A stretch of 64,000 nucleotides of DNA. Origin: Macrostomum lignano. Its lineage: Eukaryota. The translations under genes were made by a program, and so were the position numbers. The notes under the pieces were generated by a model, which saw nothing but the letters and a program-made list of their open reading frames with translations, was not told the origin of the DNA and searched no databases. Positions 10,105-59,100 of this stretch are shown one piece after another (within the stretch, counting starts at the first letter, position 1; each line of letters starts with the position of its first letter). The stretch lies in contig NIVC01001150.1 in assembly GCA_002269645.1 (NCBI GenBank), positions 198,422-262,421 on the forward strand. Direction: 5' to 3'.

Positions 10105-10136
10105 GGCTCTGTTGATCAAGCTGCGGGCTGCGGCAG

Positions 10137-36108: not shown

Positions 36109-36660
36109 TCACAATTTGTAGCTGAGCACTCTGTTACGGGCAGCTCTTGGATGTTCTCGCGTGGCGATGCTACCGCTGGATAGACCGGCGGGCTGACCGG
36201 TAGGTTGGCCGTCAGGCTCTCCGGCAGGTTGGCCGGCAGGTTCGCCGGCAGGTTGGCCGGCAGGTTGGCCGGCAGGCTCTCCGGCAGGCTGGCCGGCAGG
36301 CTCTCCGGCAGGCTGGCCGGCAGGCTCTCCGGCAGGCTGGCCGGCAGGCTGGCCGGCAGGCTCTCCGACCAGGGGCCGCAGCTGCGAGACGTGGCGCATG
36401 CAGGACTGTTCGCCGCGTTGCAGGACACACGTGTCTCCCTGGACCTGCTTGACTGTCCAAGGATGTGGCTCGAACGGCAGCTGCAGTTTGTTACGTGGTT
36501 GCTTCTTTCGCAGAACTTTGTTGCCGACTCTGACGTCGTGCTCGTTGACACCCTTGCGATCATCGAAACGCGCCTTCATGTCTTGGACATAGTTTCTGTG
36601 CCAGCTCTGCACCTCTTCATGGTTAACGTCGATGAGCTGTGATGGTTTGATGGTCGGGAT
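36109..36660 (-). pseudogene. Gypsy integrase C-terminal part with PAGQ/PAGE 12-bp repeat tail, separated from the core by the copia insertion
   Basis: Continues ...GRTMNNG|IPTIKPSQ... across the copia TSD. VGNKVLRK...PFEPHPWTV is GPY/F-like. Confidence 0.85.
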
Positions 36661-36946
36661 TGTTGTTTATAGTATATAGCTCGTACTTTTAGTACTTTAT
36701 ATAGTAATTGTCAGATACATAATATTGATTAATATTGTTAATGCAAATAGCTGTGCGTATCCCTTTCTAGAAAGTTCAATAAATATTCAATACAGTATCG
36801 TACCGATATATCTATGGTTGTTAGTTCATATCGCAAATACGCTAATACTTTAAGTGCCCCCCCAAACTGCTCAATTTTTCATCTTGTGTATTTCTTTTTG
36901 TTCAAACTGATAAAATATACTTAATTAAAAGAAGCAAACTTCAACA
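36661..36946 (+). repeat. copia 5' LTR
   Basis: Identical to 41150-41435 on visual comparison. Confidence 0.97.
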
Positions 36947-37061
36947 GGTTATAGGCCCAGCCGAGGCCACTGCGAGTACTTCGATGTACTAGATCATTCT
37001 GGTAATCTGGTTGTTCGTGCCATCTGGAAACTTGATCGCTCGGTCGATCAGTTACGTTGCT

Positions 37062-40000
37062 ATGGCTGCAAGCGAAGAAAAATGGCACATAGAGAAGCTC
37101 AGGAAGGACAATTGGATGACGTGGAAAATCCAAATGAAACATTGCTTAATCGCAAGAAGACTCTGGGGCATAGCTACCGGAGAAGATGTTCTTCAGCAAG
37201 ACGCAAATGAAGCACGACGCAATGAATTCAAGGAACAGCAACAGCGAGCAGCAGCAATGATAGTTCTGTCTCTCAGCAGTGAGTACATCTACCTTGTGAC
37301 TACATGCGATGATGATCCGAGGCAGATGTGGCAAATTTTATGTGGTCATTTCGAACGTGACTCGACTGCCAACAAGTTGTTTTTGAAGAAAAAACTATTT
37401 AGACTGCAGATGACTGATGGGACTCCAGTTCAGGAGCACATTCGCTGTCTGAAGGAGTTAACTGACAAGCTGGCGTCCATTAATGCTGCTGTGTCTGACG
37501 AAGACCAGGTTGTGATTCTTCTTAGCAGTCTACCTGACAGCTACAGTCTTCTGGTTACGGCTCTGGAGACCCGAAAGGAAGAGGAGCTGACTTTGCTGAC
37601 GGTTCAACAAGCACTGCTTAATGAAGAAATGAAACGAAGTGAAACTATGAAATACGAATCCCGTGATTCGGAATCTGCTCTTCGTGTTGACAAATTTAAG
37701 GGACGCAGACCAATTAAGTGCTACACATGTGGCAAGGAAGGACACTTCAGTAGAGAGTGCAGGTTCAACGTGAGCAACAGGCAGCAAAACTCAAAATCGA
37801 CTCTGCATAAAGCTAAAAGTGCAGAAAGTACGAGTCATTCGAATCCGAACCTGGACAACGAGATAGCCGATAGTGCCGCTACATTTCTTACCTCTGAAGA
37901 AACTGGTCCTCAGGACACAACCGCACGGTGGATAATTGACTCTGGTGCGACAAGACATATGACCTGTCAAAGGAATGCTCTAAAAGACTACACTGAATTT
38001 GATGAACCGGAAAATGTAGGGCTCGGAGACGGGCGAACAGTTCAAGCTTACGGAACTGGACGAGTGAACATCGTCACGAGACTCCCTGGTGGTGAGCGTT
38101 CTAACGCAGTACTTGGATCTGTACTTTTCGTACCTAGACTAGCCTGCAATCTGTTCAGTGTACGTGCGGCTACACTTAAGAACAATGTCATTCAGTTTGG
38201 TCACACTAGGTGCTGGATTCGAAACCAAACAGGGAAGCTAGTAGGCTTTGGAACACTAGTTGATCGATTGTATCAACTTGAGTGTGATGTAGATTGCAAC
38301 TTAGCTACAGCTGCAGTAACGACTACAAAGTCAGAGCTCGAAACTGCCAATTTGTGGCATCATCGTCTAGGACATCTCCACAGAAATCAACTCGAACAAC
38401 TATTCAAGAAAAGGTACGTCGAGGGTACTGACACTTCCATTGTGAGTGATATGAATTTCTGTGAAGCGTGCGTTGAAGGAAAGGCGCATCGAAAGAATCA
38501 CAAATCAGTGGGAGAAATTCGCTCATCAGAAGTACTGCAACTTGTGCACAGTGACATTTGTGGACCAATGCAGACGCAGTCGTTTGGCGGGAATCGATTT
38601 TTTGCGACTTTCATCGATGACTTCTCTCGCATTGTGAAGGTCTATTTTCTGAAGACTAAGTCTGAAGTCTTCCAGAAGTTTAAGGAATTCGAAGCGCAGG
38701 TGACAAATGAGACTGAAAAAACAATAAAAGTTCTCCGAACTGATGGTGGAGGAGAGTACATGTCCAAGGAATTTTCTGCGTTTTTACTTGCAAAAGGAAT
38801 TCGACACGAAATTTCGGTAGCCCACACACCAGAACAGAACGGTGTTGCTGAAAGAATGAACCGTACTCTCATCGAATCTGCTAGAACAATGATAACTCAT
38901 GCTGGTCTTAGCAATGCTTATTGGGCAGAAGCCATCAACACAGTCGCGTATATCCGCAACAGAGTCCCGACGAACTCGGTAGCGCCAATGATGACACCCT
39001 ACGAAAGATGGTGTGGACGAAAGCCAAACATCTCACATCTTCGAACGTTTGGCTGTGTAGCTTATGCTCACATTCCTACAGTAGAGAGACAAAAACTTGA
39101 TAAGAAGACTACCAAGCTAAGGTTCGTTGGCTACAGTGACAATCAAAAGGGCTACAGATTGTTTGACGAAAGAACTAGGAAAACAGTTGTTCGTTACGAT
39201 GTCATCTTCAATGAGGGAGACTTCGGAAAGTTGAATGATTTCCAGCAGAACAATGAAAAGATAAATTCACATAAGGAAGTCAACCTCGACGAGCACAACA
39301 GCCGAACAACTCCGAATGAAGAAATTGAAACTGAAATCCAACAAATTCTGCCAACGACCACGCGACAAAGGAAAACCCCAGAGCGTTTTCAATACAATGA
39401 GAACTTCGAAGTAGCTAGCCTAAGTACAACAGAGCCACAACATCGTGCTTTTCGAGCCATGGAGATTTTGGAACCCAGATCGATTGACGAGGCTTGGAGT
39501 TGTGACAATGCGAAGGAATGGAAAGAAGCAACAGACTCGGAATACAACTCTCTGATAGAAAATGATACGTGGGAATTAGTTCCTCTTCCAGAAGGACGAA
39601 AGACTGTTGGCTGCAAGTGGGTATTCAAAGTGAAGCATGACAGCTGCGGAAACATTGAACGATTCAAAGGACGCCTGGTTGCCAAAGGGTATTCTCAACA
39701 ACCTGGAGTGGATTATGACGAGACGTTTTCTCCTGTGGTAAGATTCTCATCAATCCGTACTATACTGGCATTCGCAACTCAACGAGAAATGCACATTCAT
39801 CAAATGGATGTGGTCACTGCATTTCTAAACGGACATTTAACAGAAGAAATCTTCATGGATCAACCACCCGGATACGTTAAATGCGACGAAGAGAATTTAG
39901 TCTGCAAGCTGAAAAGATCGCTATATGGTTTAAAGCAATCACCCCGGTGTTGGAACAAGGCCCTCTGTGATTACCTAATCTCGATTGGATTCAAGGAAAG

Positions 40001-41024
40001 TGGAGCAGACCCATGTGTGTTCACTCGCAAACTTGGAAACATGTCAATCATTGCGGTTTATGTTGACGACTTGGTGATGGCTACTGATACTATGGATGAA
40101 ATGCAGAGTATCAAGGAGGAATTCACTCGACGATTCAAGATGAAAGATATGGGAGAGCTTCATTACTGTTTAGGAGTGACAATAGTGATTGACTCAGAGA
40201 GACGATTTCTTCAACTTCATCAGAAGCAATACATTATGCAACTACTGAAGAAGTTTAAAATGTTGGAAGCAAACCCAGCCACAACCCCAATGGATTCAAG
40301 CGTCAAGCTCGTTGAAAACGATGGCTACAGCAAATTCGTGGATCCAAAGGCCTATCAATCAATTGTAGGCAGCCTATTGTACGCAGCGATCGCTACACGG
40401 CCAGACATTGTTCAAGCAGTGGGAGCAGTATCGAAATTCAATTCCAAACCAACTGAGGCTCATCTCACCGCTGCCAAGAGAATTCTTCGATACCTGAAAG
40501 GCTCATCGGACGTCGTTCTGAAATATGAGAAGTCTGGAAGTAACGAGATCATTGGCTACTCAGACGCTGATTGGGCGTCGGACTTGGATAGCAGACGCTC
40601 AGTCACTGGGAGTGTTTTCATTATGGCCGGTGGAGCAGTAACATGGTTAAGTCAAAAGCAAACCACGGTGGCGTTGTCAACGACAGAAGCTGAGTACATG
40701 GCCCTTGCGTCTGCGACACAGGAGGCAATATGGCTTCGTCGACTTGTAAGCGATTTGGGTGCCAATGTCACTGGGTCAACTGTAATTAAGGAAGACAATC
40801 AAGGAGCCATTGCAATGTCAAAAAATCCGATTCGACACAAGCGGACAAAGCATATTGACATCCGCTATCATTTTATTCGAGATGCTATTCAAGCTGGTAC
40901 TGTGAAACTGGAATACTGTCCGACAAAGGAAATGCTGGCGGACATTCTAACAAAGCCAATTCCCAGGCATCAGTTTGAAAATCTGCGATCAATGCTTGGT
41001 ATTAAGTGTATGGATATGAATTGA
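37062..41024 (+). CDS. copia gag-pol polyprotein (gag CCHC, protease, integrase, RT, RNase H)
   Basis: CYTCGKEGHFSREC, WIIDSGAT, LWHHRLGH...CEAC, VHSDICGP...RTDGGGEY...AERMNRT, YVDD, YSDADWA...EDNQ. Copia domain order with no stops. ATG at 37062. Confidence 0.98.
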   Translation: MAASEEKWHIEKLRKDNWMTWKIQMKHCLIARRLWGIATGEDVLQQDANEARRNEFKEQQQRAAAMIVLSLSSEYIYLVTTCDDDPRQMWQILCGHFERDSTANKLFLKKKLFRLQMTDGTPVQEHIRCLKELTDKLASINAAVSDEDQVVILLSSLPDSYSLLVTALETRKEEELTLLTVQQALLNEEMKRSETMKYESRDSESALRVDKFKGRRPIKCYTCGKEGHFSRECRFNVSNRQQNSKSTLHKAKSAESTSHSNPNLDNEIADSAATFLTSEETGPQDTTARWIIDSGATRHMTCQRNALKDYTEFDEPENVGLGDGRTVQAYGTGRVNIVTRLPGGERSNAVLGSVLFVPRLACNLFSVRAATLKNNVIQFGHTRCWIRNQTGKLVGFGTLVDRLYQLECDVDCNLATAAVTTTKSELETANLWHHRLGHLHRNQLEQLFKKRYVEGTDTSIVSDMNFCEACVEGKAHRKNHKSVGEIRSSEVLQLVHSDICGPMQTQSFGGNRFFATFIDDFSRIVKVYFLKTKSEVFQKFKEFEAQVTNETEKTIKVLRTDGGGEYMSKEFSAFLLAKGIRHEISVAHTPEQNGVAERMNRTLIESARTMITHAGLSNAYWAEAINTVAYIRNRVPTNSVAPMMTPYERWCGRKPNISHLRTFGCVAYAHIPTVERQKLDKKTTKLRFVGYSDNQKGYRLFDERTRKTVVRYDVIFNEGDFGKLNDFQQNNEKINSHKEVNLDEHNSRTTPNEEIETEIQQILPTTTRQRKTPERFQYNENFEVASLSTTEPQHRAFRAMEILEPRSIDEAWSCDNAKEWKEATDSEYNSLIENDTWELVPLPEGRKTVGCKWVFKVKHDSCGNIERFKGRLVAKGYSQQPGVDYDETFSPVVRFSSIRTILAFATQREMHIHQMDVVTAFLNGHLTEEIFMDQPPGYVKCDEENLVCKLKRSLYGLKQSPRCWNKALCDYLISIGFKESGADPCVFTRKLGNMSIIAVYVDDLVMATDTMDEMQSIKEEFTRRFKMKDMGELHYCLGVTIVIDSERRFLQLHQKQYIMQLLKKFKMLEANPATTPMDSSVKLVENDGYSKFVDPKAYQSIVGSLLYAAIATRPDIVQAVGAVSKFNSKPTEAHLTAAKRILRYLKGSSDVVLKYEKSGSNEIIGYSDADWASDLDSRRSVTGSVFIMAGGAVTWLSQKQTTVALSTTEAEYMALASATQEAIWLRRLVSDLGANVTGSTVIKEDNQGAIAMSKNPIRHKRTKHIDIRYHFIRDAIQAGTVKLEYCPTKEMLADILTKPIPRHQFENLRSMLGIKCMDMN

Positions 41025-41149
41025 AGTAACTGGAGTAACTGAAGTAACTAATGTCATTGTCATCCATTTTTAATATCAGAGACTACTGAGTAATCTACCG
41101 CGATTAACTTAAATCTTACAATGATAAGTTTCTGACAATTAAGTGGGAG

Positions 41150-41435
41150 TGTTGTTTATAGTATATAGCTCGTACTTTTAGTACTTTATATAGTAATTGT
41201 CAGATACATAATATTGATTAATATTGTTAATGCAAATAGCTGTGCGTATCCCTTTCTAGAAAGTTCAATAAATATTCAATACAGTATCGTACCGATATAT
41301 CTATGGTTGTTAGTTCATATCGCAAATACGCTAATACTTTAAGTGCCCCCCCAAACTGCTCAATTTTTCATCTTGTGTATTTCTTTTTGTTCAAACTGAT
41401 AAAATATACTTAATTAAAAGAAGCAAACTTCAACA
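41150..41435 (+). repeat. copia 3' LTR
   Basis: Identical to 36661-36946. Confidence 0.97.
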
Positions 41436-41440
41436 GGGAT

Positions 41441-41957: not shown

Positions 41958-44900
41958 CTAGCACAGTGTGCAGCACTGGACGAAGAGCTCGCAGTCGCTG
42001 CGCATCCGAGGCCACCACACCTTCGTCTGCAGGCGTTTAAGGGTGCGGTCGGCGCCCAGATGACCGGTGTGCGCCAGTTGAAGGATCGGCCTGCGCAGCG
42101 ACTTGGGGATGACGATGAGGTCACCGCGGAGTAATACTCCGTCGCTTTCCGACAGTTCGCCGCAGATGGACTTGAAGGAGCGCTGGGCTGCCGCTCGCAT
42201 GTCCCAGCGGCCGGTTCGAATCGCGTTCAGCGCCGCCTGGACGTCCCTGTCGGTGCGCGATGCTTCCCGAACCTGGTCGAGACTGAAGCCCTTCGGCACG
42301 GCCCCGGTCGACACGGCGTTAATGGAGGCGGCGTCGAGCTCTTCACCTACATTCCGACGCCGCTCTGGCAGTGGCTGCCGACTCAGCAGGTCAGCCGGGT
42401 TGGTCAAGCCTGGCCGGTAGAGCAGGTTGAAGCGGAGATGCTGAATGCGCAGCGCCATTCGCTCGATCCGCGGTGGCGGACGGGAGCCAGGCTTGAAAAG
42501 CGGCACGAGCGGTCGGTGGTCCGTCACCACGGTGAAGTCTGGGTCGCCAGCCAGATAGTGCTCAAACTTGAGACACCCAAATTTGATGGCCAACGCCTCC
42601 CGCTCGATCTGCGCGTACCTCTGCTCCACCGGCGAGAGGGCTCTGCTGGCGTAGGCGACGGGTCTGCTGTTGCCGTCTGGCTGCCGCTGCGTGAGGATGG
42701 CGCCGAGGCCGATTGGCGATGCGTCCACCAGGAGCTCCGTGTGCAGTCTGCGGTCGAAAAAGGCCAGCGTGTCCGCGTCTGTGATTGCCTTCTTGATGCC
42801 GTTGAACGCCGCTGTGTGTTTTTCTGTCCACTCCCAGGCTTGGCCCTTCTTCGTTAGCTGCCGGAGTGGGGCCGCGAGGTCAGCGAAGTTCGGGATGAAC
42901 TTTGCCAGGAAGTTAGCGGTTCCCAGGAAAGAGCGGACGTCGGCCACGTTGGAGGGCTCTCGGAAGTTCTGCATGGCGTCAATTTTCTCGGTGGCCGGTT
43001 GCATGCCCCGGGCGGTCAGGCGCATCCCGAGAAACTCGACAGTCGGCCGGGCGAACCTGCACTTGTCCTGATTGAGAGTGATCCCGAACTCTCGGAGGCG
43101 CTGAAGGCAGGCGTCCAGCCTCTCATGGTGCTGTTTCATATCGGAGGCGTACACCACCACGTCGTCGTGCGCCCACCGGACGCCGTCGATGCCGCTGAGG
43201 ATGCCAAGCATGACTCGTTGAAGGATTTCCGAGGCATTTGTGAACCCCATGCTGAGCCTCTTGAGCCGCATCAGTCCGAGGGGCGTGCTGAAGGTGAAGA
43301 GGTGACGGCTGCTCTCGTGGACTGGGATCTGATAAAAAGCCTTCCGGATATCGAGTTCGCTGAACAGCTTGGCGTCTGCCATTTCCTCTGTGATTTCGTC
43401 CAGCGTGGGGATTTGCTGCTTCTCTGGGATGACGAAAGCGTTGAGATTACGGAGGTCTTGGCAGATTCGAATGCCACCGTCGCCCTTGGGCACCACCACC
43501 ATGCGTGACACCCAGGCGCTAGGACCTTTGACTGCCTCAATGATGCCCTGCTCCTCCAAAGCCTTGAGCTCGTCCACTACGGCCTCTTTCAGGTGCGCCG
43601 CCACACGTGAGGGCGCCTGGCAGACTGGAACAGCGTCATCGGACAGCTGGATCTGGACCTCTACACCCTTGATGCAGCCGATGCCGTTGAAGACTTCTTT
43701 GTGCCTCTGCAGGATGGCCTTGAGCTGGGGGTCGCTATACTGCTCGGGGGGTGTGGTGTCGGCGATGGCGTTGATGTTTTGCGGCTTGGTAGCTTCAGGT
43801 CGCTGGATCTTCAGCACTCCTGGCTTGAATGCGGGCTGACGCCCTAGTATCGTCAGCCCGTCGCCGTCCATGATGTGGAAAGTCGCGGTAGTTCTGGCAG
43901 ATCCCACTTGGATGTCAAGATCGGCGGTACCCACAATCCTGAGAGGTGTCGGTACACCATAGGCACGAACTTCGGCTCTTGTTGGGCGTGGGCTTGGCAG
44001 GCTGAGAGCTCTGAAGGTGCCGAGACTCATGATACTGCAGCTGGCTCCGCTGTCAATCATCATGGGAAGCTGCCGGTTTGCCACCTGCACAGTCAGTGAG
44101 ACGTCGGATGGGTATTTGTCGCGGTTGTACAGCGCGAACACATCCTCGTTGACGGAGCCGTCGGCAGCTGTGAATACAGCATTGGTGCTGATTTGCTGCT
44201 GTGGGATCCGGTTGCTGTTTGACTGCCGAGGCTGACGGCAGGCAAGAGCGAGGTGGTTGGGCTTGCCGCAGTTGTGGCAGATCTTGCCCTTGGCAGCGTC
44301 GCAGGTAGCGTGGCCTTTCTCGCCGCAGCGGTAGCAGGTGCGCTGCTGCTGGTCGCCGGGCCTGCTGGTCGTCTGAGCCGGGCCACGCCTGTTCGTTCTC
44401 ACCTTGTCGCCCTTGGCAACGCTGGCCACGTGCGAGTCTGTCTTCTCCATCTCGGTGGCTTGTTCCTCAGCAGCCTCGAATGCCCTCGCCTTTCGCAAGG
44501 CCTCCTCCAGGCTGATGTTCGCCTCCTGAAGCAGCCGCCTGCGCAGCTTGTCAGAGCTGCAGGTTGCCACGAGCTGGTCTCTGATGAGCGAGTCCTTCAG
44601 CTGCTCGAAGTCGCACGGCTCTGCCGCAGTGCGCAGTCTGGCGTACCAGGATTCGATGGACTCTCCGGTGGCCTGGGTGCATAGGCGGAACTGATATCTG
44701 GCAAATACGATGTTCTTTCTTCCGTTGAAGAATGTCTTCAAAGCGTCCAGCGTCTGCTTGAGGGTGACTTGGCCGTCCTCTGTGGCCGCTGCAGGCTTGG
44801 CCTCCTCGCGGATGATGTCGGCGATTTCCTTGCCTGCTGTGTAGCTGAGTAGTTTGCACTTTTGCTTCTCGTTGGTGATGCCTGATGCATCGATGAAATC

Positions 44901-45005
44901 TTCGAAGCGGTCTGCCCATTGACTCCAGCGCTTGCCCGCGTTGTGTGGGTCTGCTGATACTGAGAATGGCTCAGGTGGGGGCAGTGAGAGAAAGTTGGCT
45001 GCCAT
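41958..45005 (-). CDS. Gypsy gag-protease-RT-RNaseH-(integrase HHCC), 1015 aa, ended by a premature stop
   Basis: Two CCHC-type knuckles, MIDSGAS protease, RT with AHDD catalytic motif, LLVDASP...EREAL RNase H, AHTGHLG...CTLC* zinc finger. Confidence 0.93.
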   Translation of the reverse strand: MAANFLSLPPPEPFSVSADPHNAGKRWSQWADRFEDFIDASGITNEKQKCKLLSYTAGKEIADIIREEAKPAAATEDGQVTLKQTLDALKTFFNGRKNIVFARYQFRLCTQATGESIESWYARLRTAAEPCDFEQLKDSLIRDQLVATCSSDKLRRRLLQEANISLEEALRKARAFEAAEEQATEMEKTDSHVASVAKGDKVRTNRRGPAQTTSRPGDQQQRTCYRCGEKGHATCDAAKGKICHNCGKPNHLALACRQPRQSNSNRIPQQQISTNAVFTAADGSVNEDVFALYNRDKYPSDVSLTVQVANRQLPMMIDSGASCSIMSLGTFRALSLPSPRPTRAEVRAYGVPTPLRIVGTADLDIQVGSARTTATFHIMDGDGLTILGRQPAFKPGVLKIQRPEATKPQNINAIADTTPPEQYSDPQLKAILQRHKEVFNGIGCIKGVEVQIQLSDDAVPVCQAPSRVAAHLKEAVVDELKALEEQGIIEAVKGPSAWVSRMVVVPKGDGGIRICQDLRNLNAFVIPEKQQIPTLDEITEEMADAKLFSELDIRKAFYQIPVHESSRHLFTFSTPLGLMRLKRLSMGFTNASEILQRVMLGILSGIDGVRWAHDDVVVYASDMKQHHERLDACLQRLREFGITLNQDKCRFARPTVEFLGMRLTARGMQPATEKIDAMQNFREPSNVADVRSFLGTANFLAKFIPNFADLAAPLRQLTKKGQAWEWTEKHTAAFNGIKKAITDADTLAFFDRRLHTELLVDASPIGLGAILTQRQPDGNSRPVAYASRALSPVEQRYAQIEREALAIKFGCLKFEHYLAGDPDFTVVTDHRPLVPLFKPGSRPPPRIERMALRIQHLRFNLLYRPGLTNPADLLSRQPLPERRRNVGEELDAASINAVSTGAVPKGFSLDQVREASRTDRDVQAALNAIRTGRWDMRAAAQRSFKSICGELSESDGVLLRGDLIVIPKSLRRPILQLAHTGHLGADRTLKRLQTKVWWPRMRSDCELFVQCCTLC

Positions 45006-45043: not shown

Positions 45044-45264
45044 TGTAGAGAGCGAAGCCGAGAGAAAGTTATGTGGTGTGTGTAGCCGATAAAGCCTCAA
45101 TCTATTGTAGGCTCTGTGCGATTGATTTATATATTTAGCAGCGACCCTGCAGTTGAGACTGCGTACATTAAAAACAAAAAGCCAAGAATATTGGATGTAC
45201 ATCGGAAATGCACACCAGGACTAAAAACACTTATTATGCAAGCACTAGGCAGCAGGTGCCTACA
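45044..45264 (-). repeat. Gypsy 5' LTR
   Basis: Direct repeat of 35772-35992. Confidence 0.95.
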
Positions 45265-45431
45265 GATGGCTTTCAAGACTTGTAGGCACCGAGGCAATGC
45301 CTTTCAGAGCCAAATGACTCAAAAACTATGGTTGGCTGGCTGAAGAAGCCTTAGCTAGGCCTTTATAAATTTAGACTTCGCTCAAAGAAAGCCTCGCTGA
45401 GTCGCCTGGCTGTTCTGACTGCTTTAAAATC

Positions 45432-46633
45432 ATGGAACTGAAACGCCAGCTGCTGTTCTGCTGCATCTCTCTGCTGCAGCTGCTCCACTGCCGCTCGGAG
45501 CACTCCTCCATCGGGTTCGCTACTGTCGCTCTGTGCCCCGACATCTCCGCTCTGCCCAGCCGACATGCCAAGTCCAAGATGCTGTGCGGCACCGCTTGCA
45601 GCGCCGACATGGACTGCGACCTGTTCCACTTCACCCGTACGACCGGACTCTGCTACCTTGGCAACTCGACCTGCGAGGGACTCCGACTGTGGACCAACGG
45701 ACCCTGTGTCTCTTACAAATCTGGTAATTTGCGAGTTCAAATCATTTTCGGTTGTACCGGACCGGTAGTTGCAGTGAACCAAATTACCAAGCCAGTTCAG
45801 CACAAAGCCCAGCATTTCAAGCAGCAGCCACTATCTTGAATATTTCAGTGCGTCAAAGGGTGCGGGCGTCGGCGGAGCCGATAGCTGAGCAGCTGAGCCT
45901 GAAGATGCTCTACCGATTCGGCACCCACGGCCTGGAGAACGCGGCCGACCCGTCCAAATACCGGCTGTGGAGCGGCAGCGCAACCACCATCGATGCCCAG
46001 GGGGCGCACTTTGTGGAGGATTCGAATTCCTTCCTGATGGCCGCCACTCCCTGCTTCGAGGGTTTCTTCAACGTAGGACACAAGTTCTCCATTTTTGTCC
46101 GGGCGAAGCATCCCATGAATATTGAGTGAGCAGATTTTTGTACGCCTCTGTACTAGAATTGTGGCATTTAAACATTTTTTATTTTACCTTCTCAAATATT
46201 CCATCATCGCAGCGGAACTTACATGACGATGCGCGAGTGCGTCGGGAACAAAGTGTCGCAGGACTTTTACACGTACGACCGGAACTTCTGGCACGATATG
46301 TACTGGCCGCCCCAGCCGAAGTATGTTCTGACCAAGTCTGGTAATGTGTTCACTCGGAGCAGCTCCGTTGCCTTGGTCTCGTCTGGGATGACGTACGACA
46401 CGAACGGAGCCGCCCATTACTTCTTCAACGGCAGCATGCACCCCGCCATGATGGCCAGCCCCGACTCGTCCGGCACTCTAACAAACTCAAGGTTCCAGTG
46501 CATTGAGCTCGGTGGCTACCTTAAAACGCCAAGGTACTCTGTGCGAGGCAGCATGTCCTGCTTCGCCATGAGCACCCGACTGCTCACGCAGGCTGAGTTC
46601 GTGCAGCTGGACAACTGGTGCAAGCAGGTCTAA
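45432..46633 (+). CDS. Secreted protein paralog A, 329 aa: signal peptide + PAN/apple-like Cys domain + probable ConA/LamG-like domain. Exons 45432-45723, 45849-46125, 46213-46633
   Basis: GT-AG introns in phases 1 and 2 give an open 990-nt CDS. Exon lengths (292/277/421) are identical to paralog B. The CGTACSADMDCDLFHF...GLCYLG spacing is PAN-like. Domain names are inference. Confidence 0.8.
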
Positions 46634-47394
46634 CTGTGGGCAGGTGTCTTGGGATCACGGAACAGTCTAGACGTTAAAGGTGTTGACATAATTGGGTCCG
46701 TCTTAGCCGTGTCTCGGGATTTCTGGATGCAACAAACTAGACTCAGAATTCGTGGGACAATACCTTGAAGTGAGGGACCTAAAATTGGAAAAAAATAGCC
46801 TATTCGAGTCGGTAATTATAGTTATTTCCTCAATCCATCAATGCAGGACGTCCTTAATGAAACCTTCGATTTATGCTTTTTTACCCAGACTACGCTATGG
46901 CCATCTCACTGTTAAAAGCCTGTAGTTGTTGTTAAAACGAACACTCGGCAAAGAGTAACTCTGTAGAAGCTGTGCTGCAACTGAAACTGCCTCGTAAAGA
47001 CATATGCGTGTGAGACATCGGAGTCAGGACACATTTGGTCGCGTTACCATGCCATTTAAAGCCGTCAACATGAGTAGCAAGCACAGACCAAACAGTGAAA
47101 CCAGACTGCACATCCAGCATTGCTTGTCTGGGCTCGTATTTGACAAAATGACACAGCAAAACATTTCCCCTCTACGCCACCCCAAAACTGTCCGGGGCCT
47201 GGGGAAGACTGCCTGTTCTTCAGCTGCCTGCCCGGTTAAATCAGCATGTACTGAAGTACATTAATGTGGCAATGGGACCAGAGTAGCAATGCTAACTAGA
47301 TTTAAACAGCTAAGCAAACTTATTCAAAAATTAAGTGCTCAAAATGGAAGAAAAATCGGAGTCTTTCACATTGCCGAGAAAGAGAAGAGGAAAT

Positions 47395-47625
47395 CATGGC
47401 TGCTCAAACAACACAGCGCTGTCTCTGGCCAGAGTGACCTTCCATAATTTTCCAAACGACAAGGAAATGAGTAACAAGTGGCTGATGGCTCTGAGACGAA
47501 CGATTTCGAGCCATCGCCATCCACACAAGTCTGCTCGATTCACTTTAAGGAATCCGACTTTGAGGAACAATTCGCTGGCTTTCTGCCTAAGGTCAAAAGG
47601 ATGGGAAGGGGTCCTACTTGAAAAG
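47395..47625 (+). pseudogene. THAP zinc-finger remnant (P-element/THAP-type transposase N-terminus or THAP gene)
   Basis: GCSNN...TFHNFPNDKEMSNKWLMALRR, then after a 1-nt frameshift near 47500, DFEPSPSTQVCSIHFKESDFE: the THAP W and CSxHF signature. Confidence 0.75.
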
Positions 47626-48232
47626 CAGGGGTCGGCAAGCTCTGTCCCGCCCTCGGTCCATGAAACTTCACAATAGCAATCCGGCTCGCTCAGGGTTTGT
47701 GTCTCTTCTCAGCTCTCTTTTTTGTCCTTTTCTCCTCTCTCCTCTCCTCTCCTCTCCTCTCCTCTCCTCTCCTCTCCTCTCCTCTCCTCTCCTCTCCTCT
47801 CCTCTCCTCTCCTCTCCTCTCCTCTCCTCTCCTCTCCTCTCCTCTCCTCTCCTCTCCTCTCCTCTCCTCTCCTCTCCTCTCCTCTCCTCTCCTCTCCTCT
47901 CCTCTCCTCTCCTCTCCTCTCCTCTCCTCTCCTCTCCTCTCCTCTCCTCTCCTCTCCTCTCCTCTCCTCTCCTCTCCTCTCCTCTCATCTCCTCTCCTCT
48001 CCTCTCCTCTCCTCTCCTCTCCTCTCCTCTCCTCTCCTCTCCTCTCATCTCCTCTCCTCTCCTCTTCTCTCCTCTCCTCTCCTCTCCTCTCCTCTCCTCT
48101 CCTCTCCTCTCCTCTCCTCTCCTCTCCTCTCTCCTTTCTTCCGTTTTCTACTTTATTCCCTTTCCTCTCTGGCCCGCAGTTGTGCACCAGATTTTATATC
48201 TGGCCCTTAGATTAAAAGTTTGCCGACCCCTG
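47626..48232. mobile_element. hAT-superfamily MITE whose interior is mostly (CCTCT)n
   Basis: TIRs CAGGGGTCGGCAA / TTGCCGACCCCTG and a perfect 8-bp TSD TTGAAAAG (47618-47625, 48233-48240). Confidence 0.92.
47733..48132. repeat. (CCTCT)n pentanucleotide microsatellite, about 400 bp
   Basis: Nearly perfect tandem pentamers. Confidence 0.97.
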
Positions 48233-49249
48233 TTGAAAAGGAACACATTTTTGCCCCTCGTGCGCAATCTCGTTATACTTTTTGGTCTGTGGTAGCAATG
48301 CAGCACACCTGTTGGGTTGGGGCCTGAATACTACAGTGATAGCAACTTTATCCCATACTTTAACCAGTTCTTGGGATACCTGTGGAGCATCTTCAACTTT
48401 TTTTACTTTTCCCATTTCAAGCTATTGGCTCGCACAGGAAGGAATGGGAAGGACTTTGGTCCTGTGCAAATCTGAGCTGTTTTAATTTGCAGTCCATGCT
48501 AATGTTTAACCCAAGAATGATCTATCTCACCTGTTTGGACTGGCATCGCAGTCTTTGCCCAGTCCCAGTTTCAATCACCTGCGCAATGGCCTGAGCGTTT
48601 CGCCGCCTCTGTCCATTGCGGCTTTTGCAATTGCCTCACGACTTGAGAAATTTTTTTTATGTATTTGAGGTTTTCTGAACTTGTGAGAAGAATATTTTTT
48701 CGAAAATTCTTGCGTGCATATAAGATTTCGATTGAACTATTTTATCGATTATTTATCTGCTTATCCCTCATTGATTTGCGGTCGAGTACCGGGAACAGAA
48801 ATTTTTTGCCTGTAGCGAGTCTGTTTTGAAACGATTCATTTCTGCTTCTGTTTCTGTTTTACATCTAAAGACACTCTTTTCGCCTTAGCAACTAAAACTC
48901 TAGAAATGTGAGTAACGCACCGCCCTTTTATGATTTTGAGCTCCTTGATGAGTCCAGAATGTCGTTGTAACACGGAACCTGTCACTTTTCACCAAACTTG
49001 AAGCTACCAATACTTTTGCTCTGAGATTTTGCCTTAATCTTAATAAAACAAATTTTATAGCAGTATATTGTTATCTTCTGTGACTAAATTTATTTTGCGA
49101 TGCTTAAAGCAGAAATACTCTGCGCTTCTTTGTCCAACTATTTTCTGCTTGTTTTCTGCTCCCTAACTGTGGCTTTGATTGCCCTTTCTGTGTCCCCAAC
49201 TCAACTCGTGTTGAGCATTTCGTCTGTTTGAGAAAGAAAATCTTCTGCT

Positions 49250-49615
49250 TGAGCATGGACCACCCTCTGATTGTGCATGGACCACCCTCTGATTGTGCAT
49301 GGACCACCCTCTGCTTATGCATGGACCACCCTCTGATTGTGCATGGACCACCCTCTGCTTATGCATGGACCACCCTCTGATTGTGCATGGACCACCCTCT
49401 GCTTATGCATGGACCACCCTCTGATTGTGCATGGACCACCCTCTGATTGTGCATGGACCACCCTCTGCTTATGCATGGACCACCCTCTGATTGTGCATGG
49501 ACCACCCTCTGCTTATGCATGGACCACCCTCTGATTGTGCATGGACCACCCTCTGATTGTGCATGGACCACCCTCTGCTTATGCATGGACCACCCTCTGC
49601 TTATGCATGGACCAC
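49250..49615. repeat. 22-bp minisatellite, two alternating variants (GCATGGACCACCCTCTG-ATTGT / -CTTAT)
   Basis: Tandem units read directly. Confidence 0.95.
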
Positions 49616-50253
49616 ATTCTGAAAGCTGGCAATAAAGCAGCCCACACCAAGCCTCCCAATCAGGCCCAGCCAGTGATTCGTCTTCCTTCTTTAACTGCAA
49701 ATGCGATTGAGACTGAGTGTTCGAGCGCCACAGCCTACATGTAGGCCTTGTGAACCTACGATGAGGCGGGGCAAGAGCGGTAGAGGAGCAGCGGAGACGG
49801 AAGACCAAATCGTGAGACTGAACAGAGAAAAAGGCAGGTGCGAGGCCCAAAAGTTAAGATGCTTTTAACCGAAGCAGTCGAAAATTGTGGGAAATGCTGC
49901 CGTCTTATTTATCAGGCTGAAAGCCTACAGAAATACATCGGTTTTTCTGGCTGGGGTTTAAAACTCTAGAGCTTACCGAATCGATGCTCAGCAACTGCTC
50001 ACAGCTATCAAAGTTTGCGATTGTGCCAGGTCGCTCACTCTTGCCAGGCAGAGTTGCAGAAGCATCTCAGAGTTCAGGCTTCAACAAAGCGGGTCTTATT
50101 CTAGACGAAAAATTTCCCCGGTTCACCGCCCGGGGACAGCGAAGGCTGAAGAGATGGCATTCCCCGAGCTGCCAATCATTCCCTCTGCCTGGGGATCTGA
50201 AGCCTTCCTGTGCGTTGCTTTTAGTAGCTTTGAGTTCAGTAGTTTATTACGAC

Positions 50254-50725
50254 TGAGGCTGACTAAGATGTCAGCACTGATGATGAGTTGACTCCAAAAT
50301 GAGACTGAGGCTGACTAGCATGTCAGCACTGATGATGAGTTCACTCCAAAATGAGACTGAGGCTGACTAAGATGTCAGCTCTGAAAATGAGTTCACTCTA
50401 AAATGAGACTGAGGCTGACTAACATGTCAGCACCGATGAGTTCACTCCAAAATGAGACTGAGGCTGACTAACATGTCAGCTCTGAAGATGAGTTCACTCT
50501 AAAATGAGACTGAGGCTGACTAACATGTCAGCACCGATGAGTTCACTCCAAAATGAGACTGAGGCTGACTAGCATGTCAGCACTGATGATGAGTTCACTC
50601 CAAAATGAGACTGAGGCTGACTAACATGTCAGCACCGATGAGTTCACTCTAAAATGAGACTGAGGCTGACTAACATGTCAGCTCTGAAGATGAGTTCACT
50701 CCAAATGATAATGAGGCTGACTAAC
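50254..50725. repeat. 49/52-bp tandem repeat (about 9 copies) with internal hairpins, upstream of paralog B
   Basis: Unit GACTGAGGCTGACTAACATGTCAGCACTGATGATGAGTTCACTCCAAAATGA. Confidence 0.92.
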
Positions 50726-50961
50726 ATATTGATGTGTTGAAGTCATAGGATGGCTCCGGGTAAGCTTCTATACTTAACCAGCTGACTTGCTTGGGTGCGG
50801 CATAGGCAGGGTGGATCACAAGTTTTCTTGAACTTAGGTACGCAAGGCCAGTGATAAAGCATTTTGGACTATCCGGCTCTTGTGGTTGGCTGGTGAGGCA
50901 GGAGCAGGGCAGCATAAATCCCGCATCGCTACAGCCTGAACCCCACAATTTCTCTGACGTC

Positions 50962-52224
50962 ATGGAACTGAAACGCCAGCTGCTGTTCTGCTGCATCTCT
51001 CTGCTGCAGCTGCTCCACTGCCGCTCGGAGCACTCCTCCATCGGGTTCGCTACTGTCGCTCTGTGCCCCGACATCTCCGCTCTGCCCAGCCGACATGCCA
51101 AGTCCAAGATGCTGTGCGGCACCGCTTGCAGCGCCAACATGGACTGCGACCTGTTCCACTTCACCCGTACGACCGGACTCTGCTACCTTGGCAACTCGAC
51201 CTGCGAGGGACTCCGACTGTGGACCAACGGACCCTGCGTCTCTTACAAATCTGGTACGTGCGTAATTTGCGAGTTCAAATCGCTTTCGGTTATTGTTGCA
51301 GTGACCCAATTATCAAATATTCACTAATCAAAACATTCATTGGCAAGTGAAGCCAGTTCAGCACAAAGCCCAGCATTTCAAGCAGCAGCCACTATCTTGA
51401 ATATTCCAGTGCGTCCAAGGGTGCGGGCATCGGCGGAGCCGATAGCTGAGCAGCTGAGCCTGAAGATGCTCTACCGATTCGGCACCCACGGCCTGGAGAA
51501 CGCGGCTGACCCGTCAAAATACCGGCTGTGGAGCGGCAGCGCCACCACCATCGATGCCCAGGGGGCGCACTTTGTTACGAAACTGACTTCCTACTTGATG
51601 GCCGCCACTCCCTGCTTCGAGTCTGTTGTCAACAAGGGCAACAAGTTTTCCTTCTTCGTTCGGGCCAAGCACCCCATGGACATCGAGTGAGTTCGCAGAT
51701 CCATGGTGTTTCACTAGCTCTGAATAAAAAGTTAAAAGGCGTTCCTGTTAATACATAAAAAGTAGAGCCGGGAATCTCAAGTGAGCCAAATCCCTCCATC
51801 CAGTGGAACCTACGTGGCGTTTCGGCAATGCAGCGGCAACAACGTGGCCCACGACTTCTACACGTACAACCGGAACTACTGGCACCAGGTGTTCTGGCCG
51901 GCCGACGGCAAATACTACCTGTCCAAGTCCGGCAACGTCTTCAGTAAGAGCAGCTCGGTCGCTCTGGTCTCCACCGGCCTCACCTACGACGCGGACCGCA
52001 ACGTGAACTTTTTCTTCAACGGCAGCATGTATTCGGCGACGCTCGACAGCTCGAAGTCGGCCAGCAACCTCAACGACGCCAACTTCCAGTGCATGCAGCT
52101 GGGGGGCTTTCCGGGAGACGCGCAGTACTCTGTGCAGGGCAGCATGTCCTGCTTCGCCCTGAGCACCCGACTGCTCACACAGGCTGAGTTCGTGCAGCTG
52201 GACAACTGGTGCAAGCAGGCCTAA
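50962..52224 (+). CDS. Secreted protein paralog B, 329 aa. Exons 50962-51253, 51410-51686, 51804-52224
   Basis: Same exon lengths and intron phases as paralog A; open 990-nt CDS. Confidence 0.8.
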
Positions 52225-54495
52225 CTGGAGCTGAGTCTGGATTCGAAGTATGCAAAATGCTGCGAACATCGACCAACAATTTGAAGAGACGCTCATGCTC
52301 AAAAATCACGCAAATTTCTCTAAAAGCCCGGGTTTTACTGCGCGATGCATGATCGATCGATACAATTTTTAAAAAATCAAAATACAAGCTTTTGAGACTT
52401 CAAATCGCAAATTCAACAACTCTCTGTGTTGGGTCTGTCTGCAGTTAATTTTCTTGAGATAGTTTAAAAAATTAAAGGCCGGCAACGCGCAAAATTGAGT
52501 CGCGTTTTTTAATTGGATTTTTGGTAATGTAGCTTTTTGGAGCGTATTTGGGCCTACACACATCGAATTTAACAGAAGATATGGTTACCACAGTAACGGA
52601 GCTTTTGTCTATGGTAGCAAGGCTGGCACAGCAGCATTGATTTGGTCCATAGTGGCTCTGAAACACAATCATGAGTCACAGCTGTGTAATGCAATTTATT
52701 TTAAGCAAATTTCAAGATCACTGTACCAACACAAGGTGACATCAAACGTTTTATCTGCTAGACTATAACAGAACAGGAAGAGCATTTTAGCATGGTCAAA
52801 ACTCCTTGTAACTTTTTGTTTGACGCCTCGCATATGGTCCACGAGCAGCTGAAAATGAACCACTGCTTCCGTTCTCACTGCTTGAGACAGTCATGTCTAA
52901 ATGAAAATCCAGGAGTGAAACTACAGAGCCGTTATGTACCAAATTGATGCTTGTTGGACTAAATTAAGTGCTGCTGTGTCAGCCTTGCTACCAGAGACCA
53001 AAGCTCCATTACTTTGGCAAACATATTTGCTTGCTTTGCAGCCCTGTCAAATCCGATGGTCATAAACCCTTCGGCCGAACCGATAGTCTATGGCCATACC
53101 GGCTGATTCGCCGCGTGCACCGGCTGCACCATAGGGCTTTGAACAAAACTATTTAAAAAACGTCATGAGCTCGAAACGAAGGAAGCAGCAATTTTTTAGT
53201 TTGCACTAAAAGACAGCAAAATTTCTCTCCCGCTACTGCTTTTTATTGCAAAATTTGCTGCTATTTAAGTGAAGTTTTACTAAATGCGAGCTTCGTATCC
53301 TGAAATGTTTAGTTGTTGACAGTGCGAATCCTGAAAGATCCGAAAGACTGTTTCGCATGGAGATTTTGGCGAGAAAAGTTTAACATTTGTTCTCCGTTGT
53401 TGCATTAATCTTAAAAACACAGAAGGGCGCTGAGCAATCAGTTTCTGATTCCTTTCCAACTCGAAAGCCGTTTTCTTCAGCAATCAGCAGCAGAAAAACG
53501 TTTTGTTTCGCAGAGTCGGATTTGCACAAGCCTTTGTGACGCCATTTGTGAGGCTTTCTCCATCCTTTCTCAAGCAAATGGTTTGCCAAAGTTCAGGCTG
53601 GCGTTTCTCTGCCGCAGCCATGACAGCCATTGTTAGCAAAAATCGATACATTGTTGCGATAAAAGCAGTTCTCACGGACTCAGCCTCGCTGGCAGCCTCC
53701 AACTTCGATTTTGTCCTCTTGGCTAAAAACATCAGCCTCCTTAATCCAAGGCTGCTCAACCCGAAGCCAGCGTCTCGATACAATGCAGGTGGGCGTTGGG
53801 CCCTTCCCATTTCACGTGACGCAATGGCAAAAGTCCATCCAAACACTGTTGATGGGGCGTCCCAAGGTGAAAGGCGGTGGGGAAGTTTGAGCTGAGGGAG
53901 CTGGGGATGCGCAGACCCTGACTAAAGCATTGCTTTAAGCGTAAAAACCTCCGCTACGCCTGAAAAGGCTTGCCGACCTGAGCTGCGGCCTTCAGTGCCA
54001 GCCCACGCAAAACTGCTGACTTCTTGGTGAAAAGCTTTTCTGTCCGGCTCAAAAAGCCAGAGCAGCAGCAACTGAAGCATTTAAAACTTCTTTCTGTGCT
54101 GCAAGTTTCTGGCCAAGCCCTGTGAGAGCAAATCGCGAGATGCAGCACCCACTTTGCGTGGGCCAGGCGCGAGAGAGCTGCCTCTAAAGCAGCCAAGCAC
54201 AAAAACCTTACAAAGTCATGCCATCTGCCACTCTTTTCCTTATTTGTAAGTTTTTCTCTCAGCTTTAAATGTAAACTTGAAACAATGCTTGTTGCTCAAG
54301 CTTATGGTAAAATTAAAAACAAATGTACCTGAGCATACTACTGCTGAGACAGAATCGCAATAGTATAAAATATGAGAAAAATATGCGATTTTTTGAAAAG
54401 CAAGCAAAACTGATGTCAATAAAGATTTCTCTGTGTCAAATCTGCGTCTACTGTCTGCCAGCGCCTTCAATGACGAGCTTCTCACCGACCGGTCC

Positions 54496-56162: not shown

Positions 56163-59100
56163 ATGCGGCCAGCCAGTCCTGCGGCCATCGCTGCCGGCCT
56201 CTTGTGCCTCGGCCTGCTGAGCCCCCTGGCTGGCGGGCGGCAGAAACTCGGTGAGTTCAGCTTGACCAGCTTGAGTCAGATTTGAGCACACTGTGAAAAT
56301 TGAGTTCAGCTTGACCAGGTTGAGTCAGATTTGAGCACACTGTGAAAATTGAGCTCACCGTTGAAATCCGCAGCGATCTACCAGAGTTCGGGCGGCTGTT
56401 TCGGTTCGCAGCTCTGGGCGAATTTGAGCAGCGCGGACTCGCCACCACCGTTCGAGATCGTCTCGGTGCGCACCGCGTCCAGGGCGAAGGCGGTGGCGGA
56501 GGAAGGTGGGGGTCGCTTTTGCTTCTGTAATTTCAGCGCTGCTATCAAATCATTTTTTCATTCGAGATCCCCAGAACCCAATTCAAATACAAACCCCACA
56601 CTATCAAATCCACAAACCCCACACTATCAAATCCACAAACCCCACACTATCAAATCCACAAACCCCACACTATCAAATCCACAAACCCCACACTATCAAA
56701 TACACAAACCCCACACTATCAAATCCACAAACCCCACACTATCAAATCCACAAACCCCACACTATCAAATACACAAACCCCACACTATCAAATACACAAA
56801 CCCCACACTATCAAATACACAAACCCCACACTATCAAATCCACAAACCCCACACTATCAAATCCACAAACCCCACACTATCAAATACACAAACCCCACAC
56901 TATCAAATACACAAACCCCACACTATCAAATCCACAAACCCCACACTATCAAATCCACAAACCCCACACTATCAAATCCACAAACCCCACACTATCAAAT
57001 ACACAAACCCCACACTATCAAATACACAAACCCCACACTATCAAATCCACAAACCCCACACTATCAAATACACAAACCCCACACTATCAAATACACAAAC
57101 CCCACACTATCAAATACACAAACCCCACACTATCAAATCCACAAACCCCACACTATCAAATCCACAAACCCCACACTATCAAATACACAAACCCCACACT
57201 ATCAAATCCACAAACCCCACACTATCAAATCCACAAACCCCACACTATCAAATCCACAAACCCCACACTATCAAATCCACAAACCCCGCACTATCAAATC
57301 CACAAACCCCACACTATCAAATCCAAACACCCCGCACTATCAAATCCACAAACCCCGCACTATCAAATACACAAACCCCACACTATCAAATACACAAACC
57401 CCACACTATCAAATCCACAAACCCCACACTATCAAATCCAAACACCCCACACTATCAAATCCACAAACCCCACACTATCAAATACACAAACCCCACACTA
57501 TCAAATACACAAACCCCACACTATCAAATCCACAAACCCCACACTATCAAATCCACAAACCCCACACTATCAAATCCACAAACCCCACACTATCAAATCC
57601 ACAAACCCCACACTATCAAATCCACAAACCCCGCACTATCAAATCCACAAACCCCACACTATCAAATACACAAACCCCACACTATCAAATACACAAACCC
57701 CGCACTATCAAATCCACAAACTCCACACTATCAAATACACAAACCCCACACTATCAAATCCAAACACCCCACACTATCAAATCCAAACACCCCACACCGC
57801 AAACGCCACAAACCCACACAAACAAATCCACAAGTCAAGTCAAAACGGCAGCCGGAATGCCAGTTTAAGCGACAACAGAGCACTAATCATCAGCCAAGAG
57901 CACTGAGTACCCGATCGCAACGGAGCAACGGATCATGAGGGAACTGAGCTGTTTATTTGAGAGCTGAGGCAGGGCGGAGCTGCAGCAGGGAGAAGGTCGC
58001 TCCCGTACTCACCGTGAGCAGTGAGCAGTCGATGAATAATTCATAGCTTGCCCCCGCTGGGCCTCCTATTTTTAGCAGCAGCAGAAGGCGGGTAGGCAGC
58101 AACAGCCGTAGAAATCAATCGCAGCCCCCCTCCCCGCGACTTCAGCAAGGGGCGGCGGCGCACCGCAGCTCCCGCTGGTGAGCATCGACTGGGGCGGCGC
58201 CTGCGGCTCTTCCGCCCGGCCCGCCCGGCTCTCCGCCCTGCCCGGCTATGCCGACGTGTCCTTCGCTGCCGCCGGCGCCGCGGACCTGCGCTGCCTCGCT
58301 GAAGGCCGCCTCCAGGCCGCTGCGCTCCGCTTCTTGCAGGCCTCGGCCGCGCTGGTCATCAGCGGTGAGCTGCCCGGAGTCCCTTGGATCCGTTGATAAA
58401 AATAGCCTTTCCAACACTTGAAAACCACAGCAGCCCCTTACAAGAACTGTGCATGTATGTGCACGTTAAATATGTTGACCTATTTTGAAAGTTTAAATTC
58501 GTGGGAACTATTCTGTGCTCCCGCCTCTGGTTCGAATCCCCATCTCCTCACTCCCGGTTCGAATCCCCATCTCCTCACTACCGGTTCTAATCCCCCATCT
58601 CCTCACTACCGGTTCGAATCCCCATCTCCTCACTCCAAGTTCGAATCCCCATCTCCTCACTACCGGTTCTAATCCCCATCTCCTCACTCCCGGTTCGAAT
58701 CCCCATCTCCTCACTACCGGTTCTAATCCCCATCTCCTCACTACCGGTTCTAATCCCCATCTCCTCACTACCGGTTCTAATCCCCATCTCCTCACTCCCG
58801 GTTCGAATCCCCATCTCCTCACTCCCGGTTCGAATCCCCATCTCCTCACTCCAAGTTCGAATCCCCATCTACTCACTCCCGGTTCGAATCCCCATCTCCT
58901 CACTCCAAGTTCGAATCCCCATCTCCTCACTCCGGTTCGAATCCCCATCTCCTCACTCCAAGTTCGAATCCCCATCTCCTCACTCCGGTTCGAATCCCCA
59001 TCTCCTCACTCCAAGTTCGAATCCCCATCTCCTCACTCCGGTTCGAATCCCCATCTCCTCACTCCAAGTTCGAATCCCCATCTCCTCACTCCAAGTTCGA

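Follow-up and report, generated by a model that had tools for sequence, protein, structure and literature searches.

In the 64,000-nt stretch of Macrostomum lignano DNA that was analyzed here (hereafter the window), two genes, A (45432–46633) and B (50962–52224), are arranged head-to-tail on the plus strand. They are likely to be old tandem paralogs, the ends of which were homogenized by non-allelic gene conversion, while the core escaped from it. Both genes consist of three exons of 292, 277, and 421 nt, which are separated by GT-AG introns throughout and result in a coding sequence (CDS) of 990 nt for a protein of 329 amino acids (aa), and the two CDS can be aligned without a single insertion or deletion (indel). 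Within the window, A and B are the only copies of their family. After splicing, the protein of A matches the UniRef entry A0A1I8JLW1 from M. lignano with 100% identity, and B-type proteins (P0003, P0036, and P0037) are also on record for this species; the near-identical P0003 (B′) served as the query for B in the large protein searches. The coordinates of the individual features are summarized in Table 1.

Near-identical ends enclose a diverged core

At the 5′ end, A and B differ at only seven of 458 coding nucleotides, namely at two positions in the 292 nt of exon 1 and at five in the first 166 nt of exon 2. Directly after GCGCACTTTGT, this identity is lost at window positions 46015 in A and 51576 in B, and 139 of the following 445 nt (31%, CDS nt 459–903) differ, until near-identity returns for the last 87 nt with three differences. 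A preliminary description of this locus, made from the sequence alone, had reported these counts, the lack of indels in the CDS, and the abrupt loss of identity after 46014 / 51575, and it had listed VEDSNSF/VTKLTSY and WHDMYWPPQPKY/WHQVFWPADGKY as diverged peptide pairs; all of this was reproduced, with the divergence setting in at CDS nt 459. The longest identical run between the two genes spans 174 nt, whereas 20,000 permutations gave no run longer than 88 nt. Among models with two breakpoints, the best one assigned the core to CDS nt 459–890 with a chi-square of 165 (null maximum of 29), and Fisher's test of the ends against the core resulted in p = 5e-42.

The mosaic extends to the non-coding DNA. 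Similarity detected by blastn is limited to 45430–46636 in A and 50960–52227 in B, so that it begins 2 nt upstream of the ATG and ends 3 nt downstream of the stop codon. Intron 1 is homologous over its full length; its ends are almost unchanged between A and B, and two indels separate the copies. Intron 2 of A and B, by contrast, shows no alignable similarity, its alignment being no better than chance. The same holds for the 100-nt flanks of the two genes, the alignment of which was no better than chance either. The unrelated second intron and the unrelated 5′ flanks that had been described before are thus real features of the locus, and homology starts as little as 2 nt upstream of the ATG. 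TATA-like motifs are located 68 nt before the ATG of A (TATAAA, 45364–45369) and 49 nt before the ATG of B (CATAAAT, 50913–50919). As sequence motifs in otherwise unrelated upstream DNA, they may hint at independent promoters.

With regards to synonymous divergence (dS, estimated according to Nei-Gojobori), values of 0.046 for codons 1–152, 1.12 for codons 153–190, 1.13 for codons 191–301, and 0.058 for codons 302–329 were obtained, so that the core is approximately 25 times more diverged at synonymous sites than the ends. A contrast of 0.046, 1.13, and 0.058 along one gene reflects history and not constraint. In combination with the shared intron 1 and the unrelated intron 2, it can be concluded that the regions of A and B are of differing age.

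Further copies of the pair and a second tandem pair

A second copy of the pair is represented by UniRef A0A1I8GLR3, a fused A′+B′ model from another scaffold, which carries the same two cores and has retained the 5′ flank of B. The core proteins of A and A′ as well as those of B and B′ differ at none of 149 residues, and the few differences all lie in the frame around the core. Only two core types are found at the A/B locus. The preliminary description had considered cassette-like shuffling of a variable module as one option, which found no support: no donor cassette turned up in the databases searched, and each core type is unique and unchanged in the second copy of the pair.

Gene C (Mlig027363), the most closely related further member of the family, was retrieved together with its flanking DNA from three Mlig_3_7 contigs (L001–L003), and on each of these contigs an unannotated partner gene, D, is located approximately 5.7 kb upstream of C. 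Gene D is missing from the NCBI protein set and did not turn up among the proteins from the database searches. C/D is the locus outside the window that was compared as DNA; searches for the exact proteins A (P0001) and B′ (P0003) led to no contig. The D copies on L002 and L003 are intact (328 aa), and the copy on L001 (D1) has two 1-nt deletions in homopolymer runs, which are either assembly errors or the mark of a copy-specific pseudogene. Intron 1 has a length of 897 nt in C versus 89 nt in D, and intron 2 of D is enlarged by tandem repeats of an approximately 60-nt unit (L001, 5000–5740). The genealogies of the copies conflict, as L001 and L002 are nearly identical for gene C with L003 standing apart, whereas L001 and L003 are nearly identical for gene D with L002 standing apart. 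This implies either an exchange between duplicated or allelic copies, located between D and C, or an assembly mis-join. Between the A/B and D/C loci, a comparison of non-coding sequence and of neighboring genes revealed nothing shared, or satellite noise only.

The C/D pair belongs to the same subfamily as A/B and is a mosaic likewise, but its 5′ tract runs to the end of exon 2 and does not stop at GAHF. Here, dS was approximately 0.2 at the 5′ end, 0.04–0.09 in the tail of exon 2, 1.1–1.3 in the exon 3 core, and 0.28–0.35 at the 3′ end. Synonymous divergence along the gene thus stays non-uniform once more paralogs are included. When the loci are compared with each other, the dS of the 5′ region is approximately 0.7 and its amino-acid identity about 60%, and it is consequently not unusually constrained. 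Differential purifying selection alone was ruled out on these grounds as a source of the mosaic.

The four genes together are monophyletic with 100% neighbor-joining (NJ) bootstrap support when more distant family members are used as outgroups. Within this group, the informative sites for the split AB|CD (relative to the two alternative splits) amounted to 104:0:0 in the 5′ region versus 14:12:4 in the core. The grouping of A with B received an NJ bootstrap of 100% for the 5′ region and 99% for the 3′ region, but of only 34% for the exon 3 core, where B and D were joined with 50%. Hence, the ends cluster by locus, whereas the tree of the four cores is star-like and unresolved. From these region-specific trees and site patterns, it follows that the four cores split at approximately the same time and that the ends have since been homogenized within each locus. 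Positional orthology, pairing A with D and B with C, was also considered and is not supported; of the three splits, AD|BC is backed by the smallest number of informative sites, and the closest cores are those of B and D.

As M. lignano is a hidden tetraploid and its genome is difficult to assemble (PMC5704211, PMC10733133), the mosaic could in principle be a chimera that arose when duplicates were collapsed or mis-joined in a neopolyploid genome rich in repeats. Satellites indeed fill the interval between A and B, and the two homopolymer deletions of D1 resemble assembly errors. Nevertheless, we regard an artefact as extremely improbable: both mosaic proteins are found in several UniProt records from other scaffolds, including the fused A′+B′ model with the 5′ flank of B, the architecture of C/D matches on three separate contigs, and the reading frames of A and B are uninterrupted, their splice sites being canonical.

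Probable gene conversion at the ends versus replacement of the core

Partial concerted evolution would explain the locus as follows. Conversion between the neighbors would keep overwriting two tracts, one that begins at the ATG, includes intron 1, and ends with codon 152, and another that comprises the last 28 codons, and both tracts would therefore be only about as old as the recent genome duplication of the species (dS ~0.05). Codons 153–301 and intron 2 would no longer be converted, and their divergence would be as old as the split from C/D (dS ~1, saturated). The flanks would be too diverged to pair, so that the converted tracts would end at the edges of the coding sequence. Conversion would presumably be recurrent instead of a single event, and the core may have escaped through a divergence that prevents pairing, whether or not selection contributed. 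Since the divergence spans synonymous sites as well as intron 2, a passive escape from conversion suffices for the core.

The earlier suggestion that A and B are old paralogs with both ends homogenized by gene conversion is hence backed by the dS contrast, intron 1, the regional trees, and the second pair. A/B displays a regional contrast in dS, conflicting trees, non-coding sequence within the shared tract, and no regional difference in mutation rate, all of which are expected from conversion; C/D lacks non-coding sequence in the shared tract, as its intron 1 is unrelated. The GC content at third codon positions (GC3), a possible trace of biased conversion, gave a mixed result, with 97–100% in the presumably converted tail of exon 2 in C/D versus 73–76% in the C/D core and no clear trend in A/B. 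Two other processes were rejected. Unequal crossing-over as the origin of the shared 5′ end would carry the upstream flank too, yet the flanks are unrelated, and cDNA-mediated conversion is ruled out for A/B, where intron 1 is kept and homologous.

Several observations weigh against gene conversion at the ends. Intron 1 of C and D is without similarity, although exons 1 and 2 are approximately 90% identical, and the converted tracts of C/D would thus have to stay within single exons. Of the 16 5′ variants specific to C3, 11 match D, where about half would be expected without conversion, so that this sign of exchange is not significant. In A/B, the perfect identity over the first 174 nt begins exactly at the edge of homology, which is somewhat unexpected because conversion needs homology beyond the tract. 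Moreover, the two end tracts are equally low in divergence, and a single event replacing the core would be more economical. Finally, the search covered part of the M. lignano gene set and gene D is unannotated at NCBI, so unsampled paralogs may exist.

The main rival explanation is built on such a replacement. In this case, A and B would be recent duplicates of the whole CDS (dS ~0.05), in one of which a single contiguous conversion from an unsampled divergent paralog would have overwritten codons 153–301 and intron 2. Assuming one such tract is simpler than assuming two at the ends, and the equally low dS of 0.046 and 0.058 at both ends would be a direct consequence, but the unrelated flanks demand a recent duplication that spans exactly the range from ATG-2 to stop+3. 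The existence of unannotated members, exemplified by gene D, provides room for a donor; however, no A-like or B-like core was found beyond the A/B copies in the databases searched, the nearest core to that of B, which belongs to D, is only 69.5% identical, and the mosaic of C/D would call for further unknown donors. Overall, we hold a replacement of the core to be unlikely.

Gene conversion with an escaped core has well-known precedents. Concerted evolution with partial escape from conversion is found in tandem duplicates such as the human gamma-globin genes HBG1/HBG2, RHD/RHCE, and the red/green opsins, and the theory of conversion between duplicates was reportedly developed by Walsh (1987), Innan (2003), and Teshima & Innan (2004). 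A/B resembles these cases in that neighboring paralogs share near-identical tracts, including non-coding DNA, with sharp shifts to old divergence, that the tracts halt at the limits of homology, and that trees vary by region. In contrast to the textbook pattern, both ends of A/B are homogenized around a central escaped island, homology is confined to the stretch from ATG through stop, and the pattern is seen in two or more pairs within a single lineage-restricted family.

A PAN module joined to a predicted lectin-like jelly roll

An N-terminal hydrophobic helix, which has low confidence in the AF2 model, is taken as a putative signal peptide, and the proteins are presumed to be secreted. It is followed by a cysteine-rich module of approximately 70 aa that fills exon 1, as in the PAN/Apple group (PF00024; plasminogen/HGF N, MIC4). 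PAN_1 matched A and B with 18.8 and 19.7 bits, respectively, which is below the gathering threshold of 21.4 (match in A at aa 46–78), and weak PAN_1 matches were seen in 9 of 13 family members. When the family profile was compared with solved structures, the MIC4 apple domain was hit with E-values of 1.9e-4 and 3.1e-4, micronemal antigen L2 with 2.6e-3, and the HGF N domain with 0.13. Besides their scores, A and B differ from PAN/Apple proteins in having a single module that is fused to a LamG-like domain.

For aa 100–329 of A and B, Pfam gave no match, and the sub-threshold PAN_1 is their sole Pfam match overall. The AF2 model (predicted local distance difference test, pLDDT, 82.6; predicted template modeling score, pTM, 0.71) places a beta-sandwich after the PAN module. 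Foldseek returned 292 matches in the PDB at E ≤ 0.001, the top ones being lectin-like jelly rolls with a probability of 1.0 and a TMq of 0.34–0.51. One of the 13 family members matches Laminin_G_3 (4.2e-6), and a C-type copy is labelled LAM_G_DOMAIN in UniProt. A/B thus share the predicted C-terminal beta-sandwich jelly roll with LamG_3 (PF13385) and the Concanavalin A-like superfamily, but they are unlike its members in their missing Pfam match and in an identity of 9–14% to any solved structure. The PAN + ConA-like architecture that the preliminary description had proposed is supported by AF2, Foldseek, and the family profile. Its second half could not be recovered from A and B themselves by Pfam, and because only the sub-threshold PAN_1 was obtained in this way, the ConA-like assignment needed the model, the fold search, and a family member.

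The top Foldseek matches are the jelly-roll part of the clostridial neurotoxin binding domain, with 9–14% identity. As judged from the predicted model, this match reflects the ConA-like fold only and has no bearing on toxicity, since A and B are without any other part of those proteins: at 329 aa, they lack the zinc-protease light chain, the translocation domain, and the C-terminal trefoil with the ganglioside site. The family profile gave no sequence-level match to clostridial neurotoxins in the PDB, and the fold match covers the jelly roll only.

A profile search of 1.84 billion representative proteins yielded 21 relatives, and the 10 that were traced to their source are all from M. lignano. 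The PAN + LamG-like family is uncharacterized and apparently lineage-restricted. We know of no named family in which a single PAN module is fused to a LamG-like domain, and the earlier remark that the architecture is unnamed still stands, as the family has no curated name. The UniProt names of its members (GON, Fibrinogen C-terminal, Lgl_C, and TLDc) are mutually inconsistent and were disregarded. A third tandem pair is contained in the fused model A0A1I8JIC5 (P0007), the halves of which are 92% identical in PAN and approximately 30–40% identical in the later jelly roll. At the protein level, this suggests that the pair may follow the same trend of frame and core.

Selection and mutation in the core

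The protein parts encoded by the shared tracts are the presumed signal peptide, the PAN module, the first strands and the last strand of the jelly roll, and the C-terminal helix, and the core comprises the central strands and loops. For the core of A and B, the non-synonymous divergence (dN) was 0.28 and dN/dS was 0.27, which is a coarse test as dS is saturated. The 64 amino-acid differences between the cores of A and B are slightly more frequent outside strands than within them (51% versus 36%), although not significantly so (p = 0.10). The preliminary description had suggested a putative ligand-binding surface that is kept distinct. Given the dN/dS of 0.27, the lack of a significant strand bias, the identical core proteins in the second copy of the pair, and the sufficiency of a passive escape, selection for such distinct surfaces finds no support.

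A stronger version would be targeted diversification, that is, a core made hypervariable by local hypermutation and/or strong positive selection between conserved ends, as in immune, venom, or gamete-recognition genes. Sharp boundaries would fit this picture, as would the secreted-lectin look of a family that is lineage-restricted and expanded. However, the dN/dS values of the core for pairs other than A–B are 0.27–0.56, likewise with saturated dS; the value of approximately 1.3 for C1 versus C3 speaks in favor of diversification, but was calculated from 14.5 non-synonymous and 3.5 synonymous changes. Divergence at synonymous sites and in intron 2 is as high as at replacement sites, the differences are not significantly concentrated outside strands, and the core proteins of A/A′ and B/B′ are identical. 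Among duplicate copies of one gene, dS was 0.056 in the 5′ region versus 0.045 in the core for C1–C3 and 0.116 versus 0.204 for D1–D2, the latter difference being given without a formal test. No excess of dS in the core is thus seen among copies of one gene, which argues against local hypermutation, and this process was ruled out. Altogether, targeted diversification appears highly improbable.

The resemblance to conotoxin precursors, snail FREPs, and gamete-recognition lectins consists of a secreted look and a near-invariant N-terminal part, which is followed by a sharply bounded divergent part. In contrast to these systems, A/B exhibits neither hypervariability among copies nor a local excess of mutations, the dN/dS of its core is well below 1, and only two core types occur. 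The parallel to immune, allorecognition, or reproductive proteins that the preliminary description had drawn, and thereby a role of A and B in immunity or reproduction, finds no support here. With respect to expression, the literature on the gene id, on Apple domains in Macrostomum, and on lectins among seminal-fluid candidates contained nothing usable.

Surrounding DNA

Upstream of A, a Ty1/copia-like element is inserted into a Ty3/gypsy-like element, and these nested long terminal repeat (LTR) retrotransposons are young. The right LTR of the gypsy-like element stops 168 nt before the ATG of A, so that the own 5′ flank of A is reduced to 45265–45431, and these remaining 167 nt are unrelated to the flank of B. 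Between A and B, a frameshifted THAP zinc-finger remnant is located at approximately 47400–47570 (Pfam THAP, E-value of 1e-11 for the joined reading and 1e-5 for the plain open reading frame, ORF), which is probably the relic of a P-element-like transposase. The window as a whole is exceptionally rich in satellites, which together with long ORFs account for its other features listed in Table 1.

Table 1. Coordinates of genes A and B, their mosaic tracts, and further features (window positions, unless a contig is named).
Feature	Position	Strand	Remarks
Gene A exon 1	45432–45723	+	start codon, presumed signal peptide, PAN/Apple module, aa 1–97
Gene A exon 2	45849–46125	+	linker and first jelly-roll strands, aa 98–190
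Gene A exon 3	46213–46633	+	remaining LamG/ConA-like jelly roll, C-terminal helix, stop codon
Gene B exon 1	50962–51253	+	
Gene B exon 2	51410–51686	+	
Gene B exon 3	51804–52224	+	includes stop codon
A 5′ shared (probably converted) tract	45430–46014	+	exon 1, intron 1, first 166 nt of exon 2; B partner 50960–51575
A divergent core	46015–46546	+	exon 2 end, intron 2, most of exon 3 (codons 153–301); B partner 51576–52137
A 3′ shared (probably converted) tract	46547–46636	+	last strand, C-terminal helix, stop; B partner 52138–52227
B 5′ shared tract	50960–51575	+	
B divergent core	51576–52137	+	
B 3′ shared tract	52138–52227	+	
Gene D copies	L001 4330–6187; L002 4380–5569; L003 4650–6154		upstream tandem partner of Mlig027363 (gene C)
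Ty3/gypsy-like element, LTRs	35772–35992 and 45044–45264	-	221 nt, 99.5% identical
Ty3/gypsy-like gag-pol ORF	41958–45005	-	
Ty1/copia-like element inside gypsy-like element	36656–41437		293-nt LTRs 100% identical; ORF 37011–41024
Satellite, 17-mer x259	23027–27420		4.4 kb, strong A/C skew
Satellite, 27-mer x101	58530–61226		
Satellite, 23-mer x54	56589–57833		
Satellite, (CTCTC)79	47737–48131		between A and B
Satellite, 22-mer x17	49244–49622		between A and B
Satellite, 52-mer x9	50251–50727		between A and B
FAT/cadherin-like ORF	2359–7251	-	1630 aa, 11 cadherin repeats, uninterrupted
Ribosomal S9/S16-like ORF	9661–10431	-	long, uninterrupted
DEG/ENaC (ASC) channel ORF	15332–17371	-	long, uninterrupted
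DUF3504/QRICH1-domain ORF	17777–19102	+	long, uninterrupted

Implications for the gene family

In terms of function, A and B would be secreted proteins that bind a putative carbohydrate or protein ligand, and the two cores would then represent two specificities on a common frame. A more far-reaching reading is that of a Macrostomum-specific recognition system of tandem pairs, in which conversion keeps a constant handle uniform and selection shields the binding cores. Besides the signal peptide and the PAN module, the proposed handle would include the jelly-roll strands at the N- and C-terminal ends. If this were true, each locus would supply two specificities under separate promoters, directed at, for example, microbes, mucus glycans, or partner-derived material; we consider such a system quite improbable.

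Partial concerted evolution is a known process that requires no new mechanism, and the locus is a clear-cut yet unremarkable case of it within an unstudied family. What distinguishes the locus are its sharp boundaries, a second pair that serves as an internal control, and duplicated copies that calibrate time. It could therefore be utilized to measure the limits of conversion tracts and the escape from conversion in a genetically tractable neopolyploid flatworm. At the same time, it draws attention to the unstudied PAN + LamG-like family, the members of which are secreted by appearance and in some cases unannotated.

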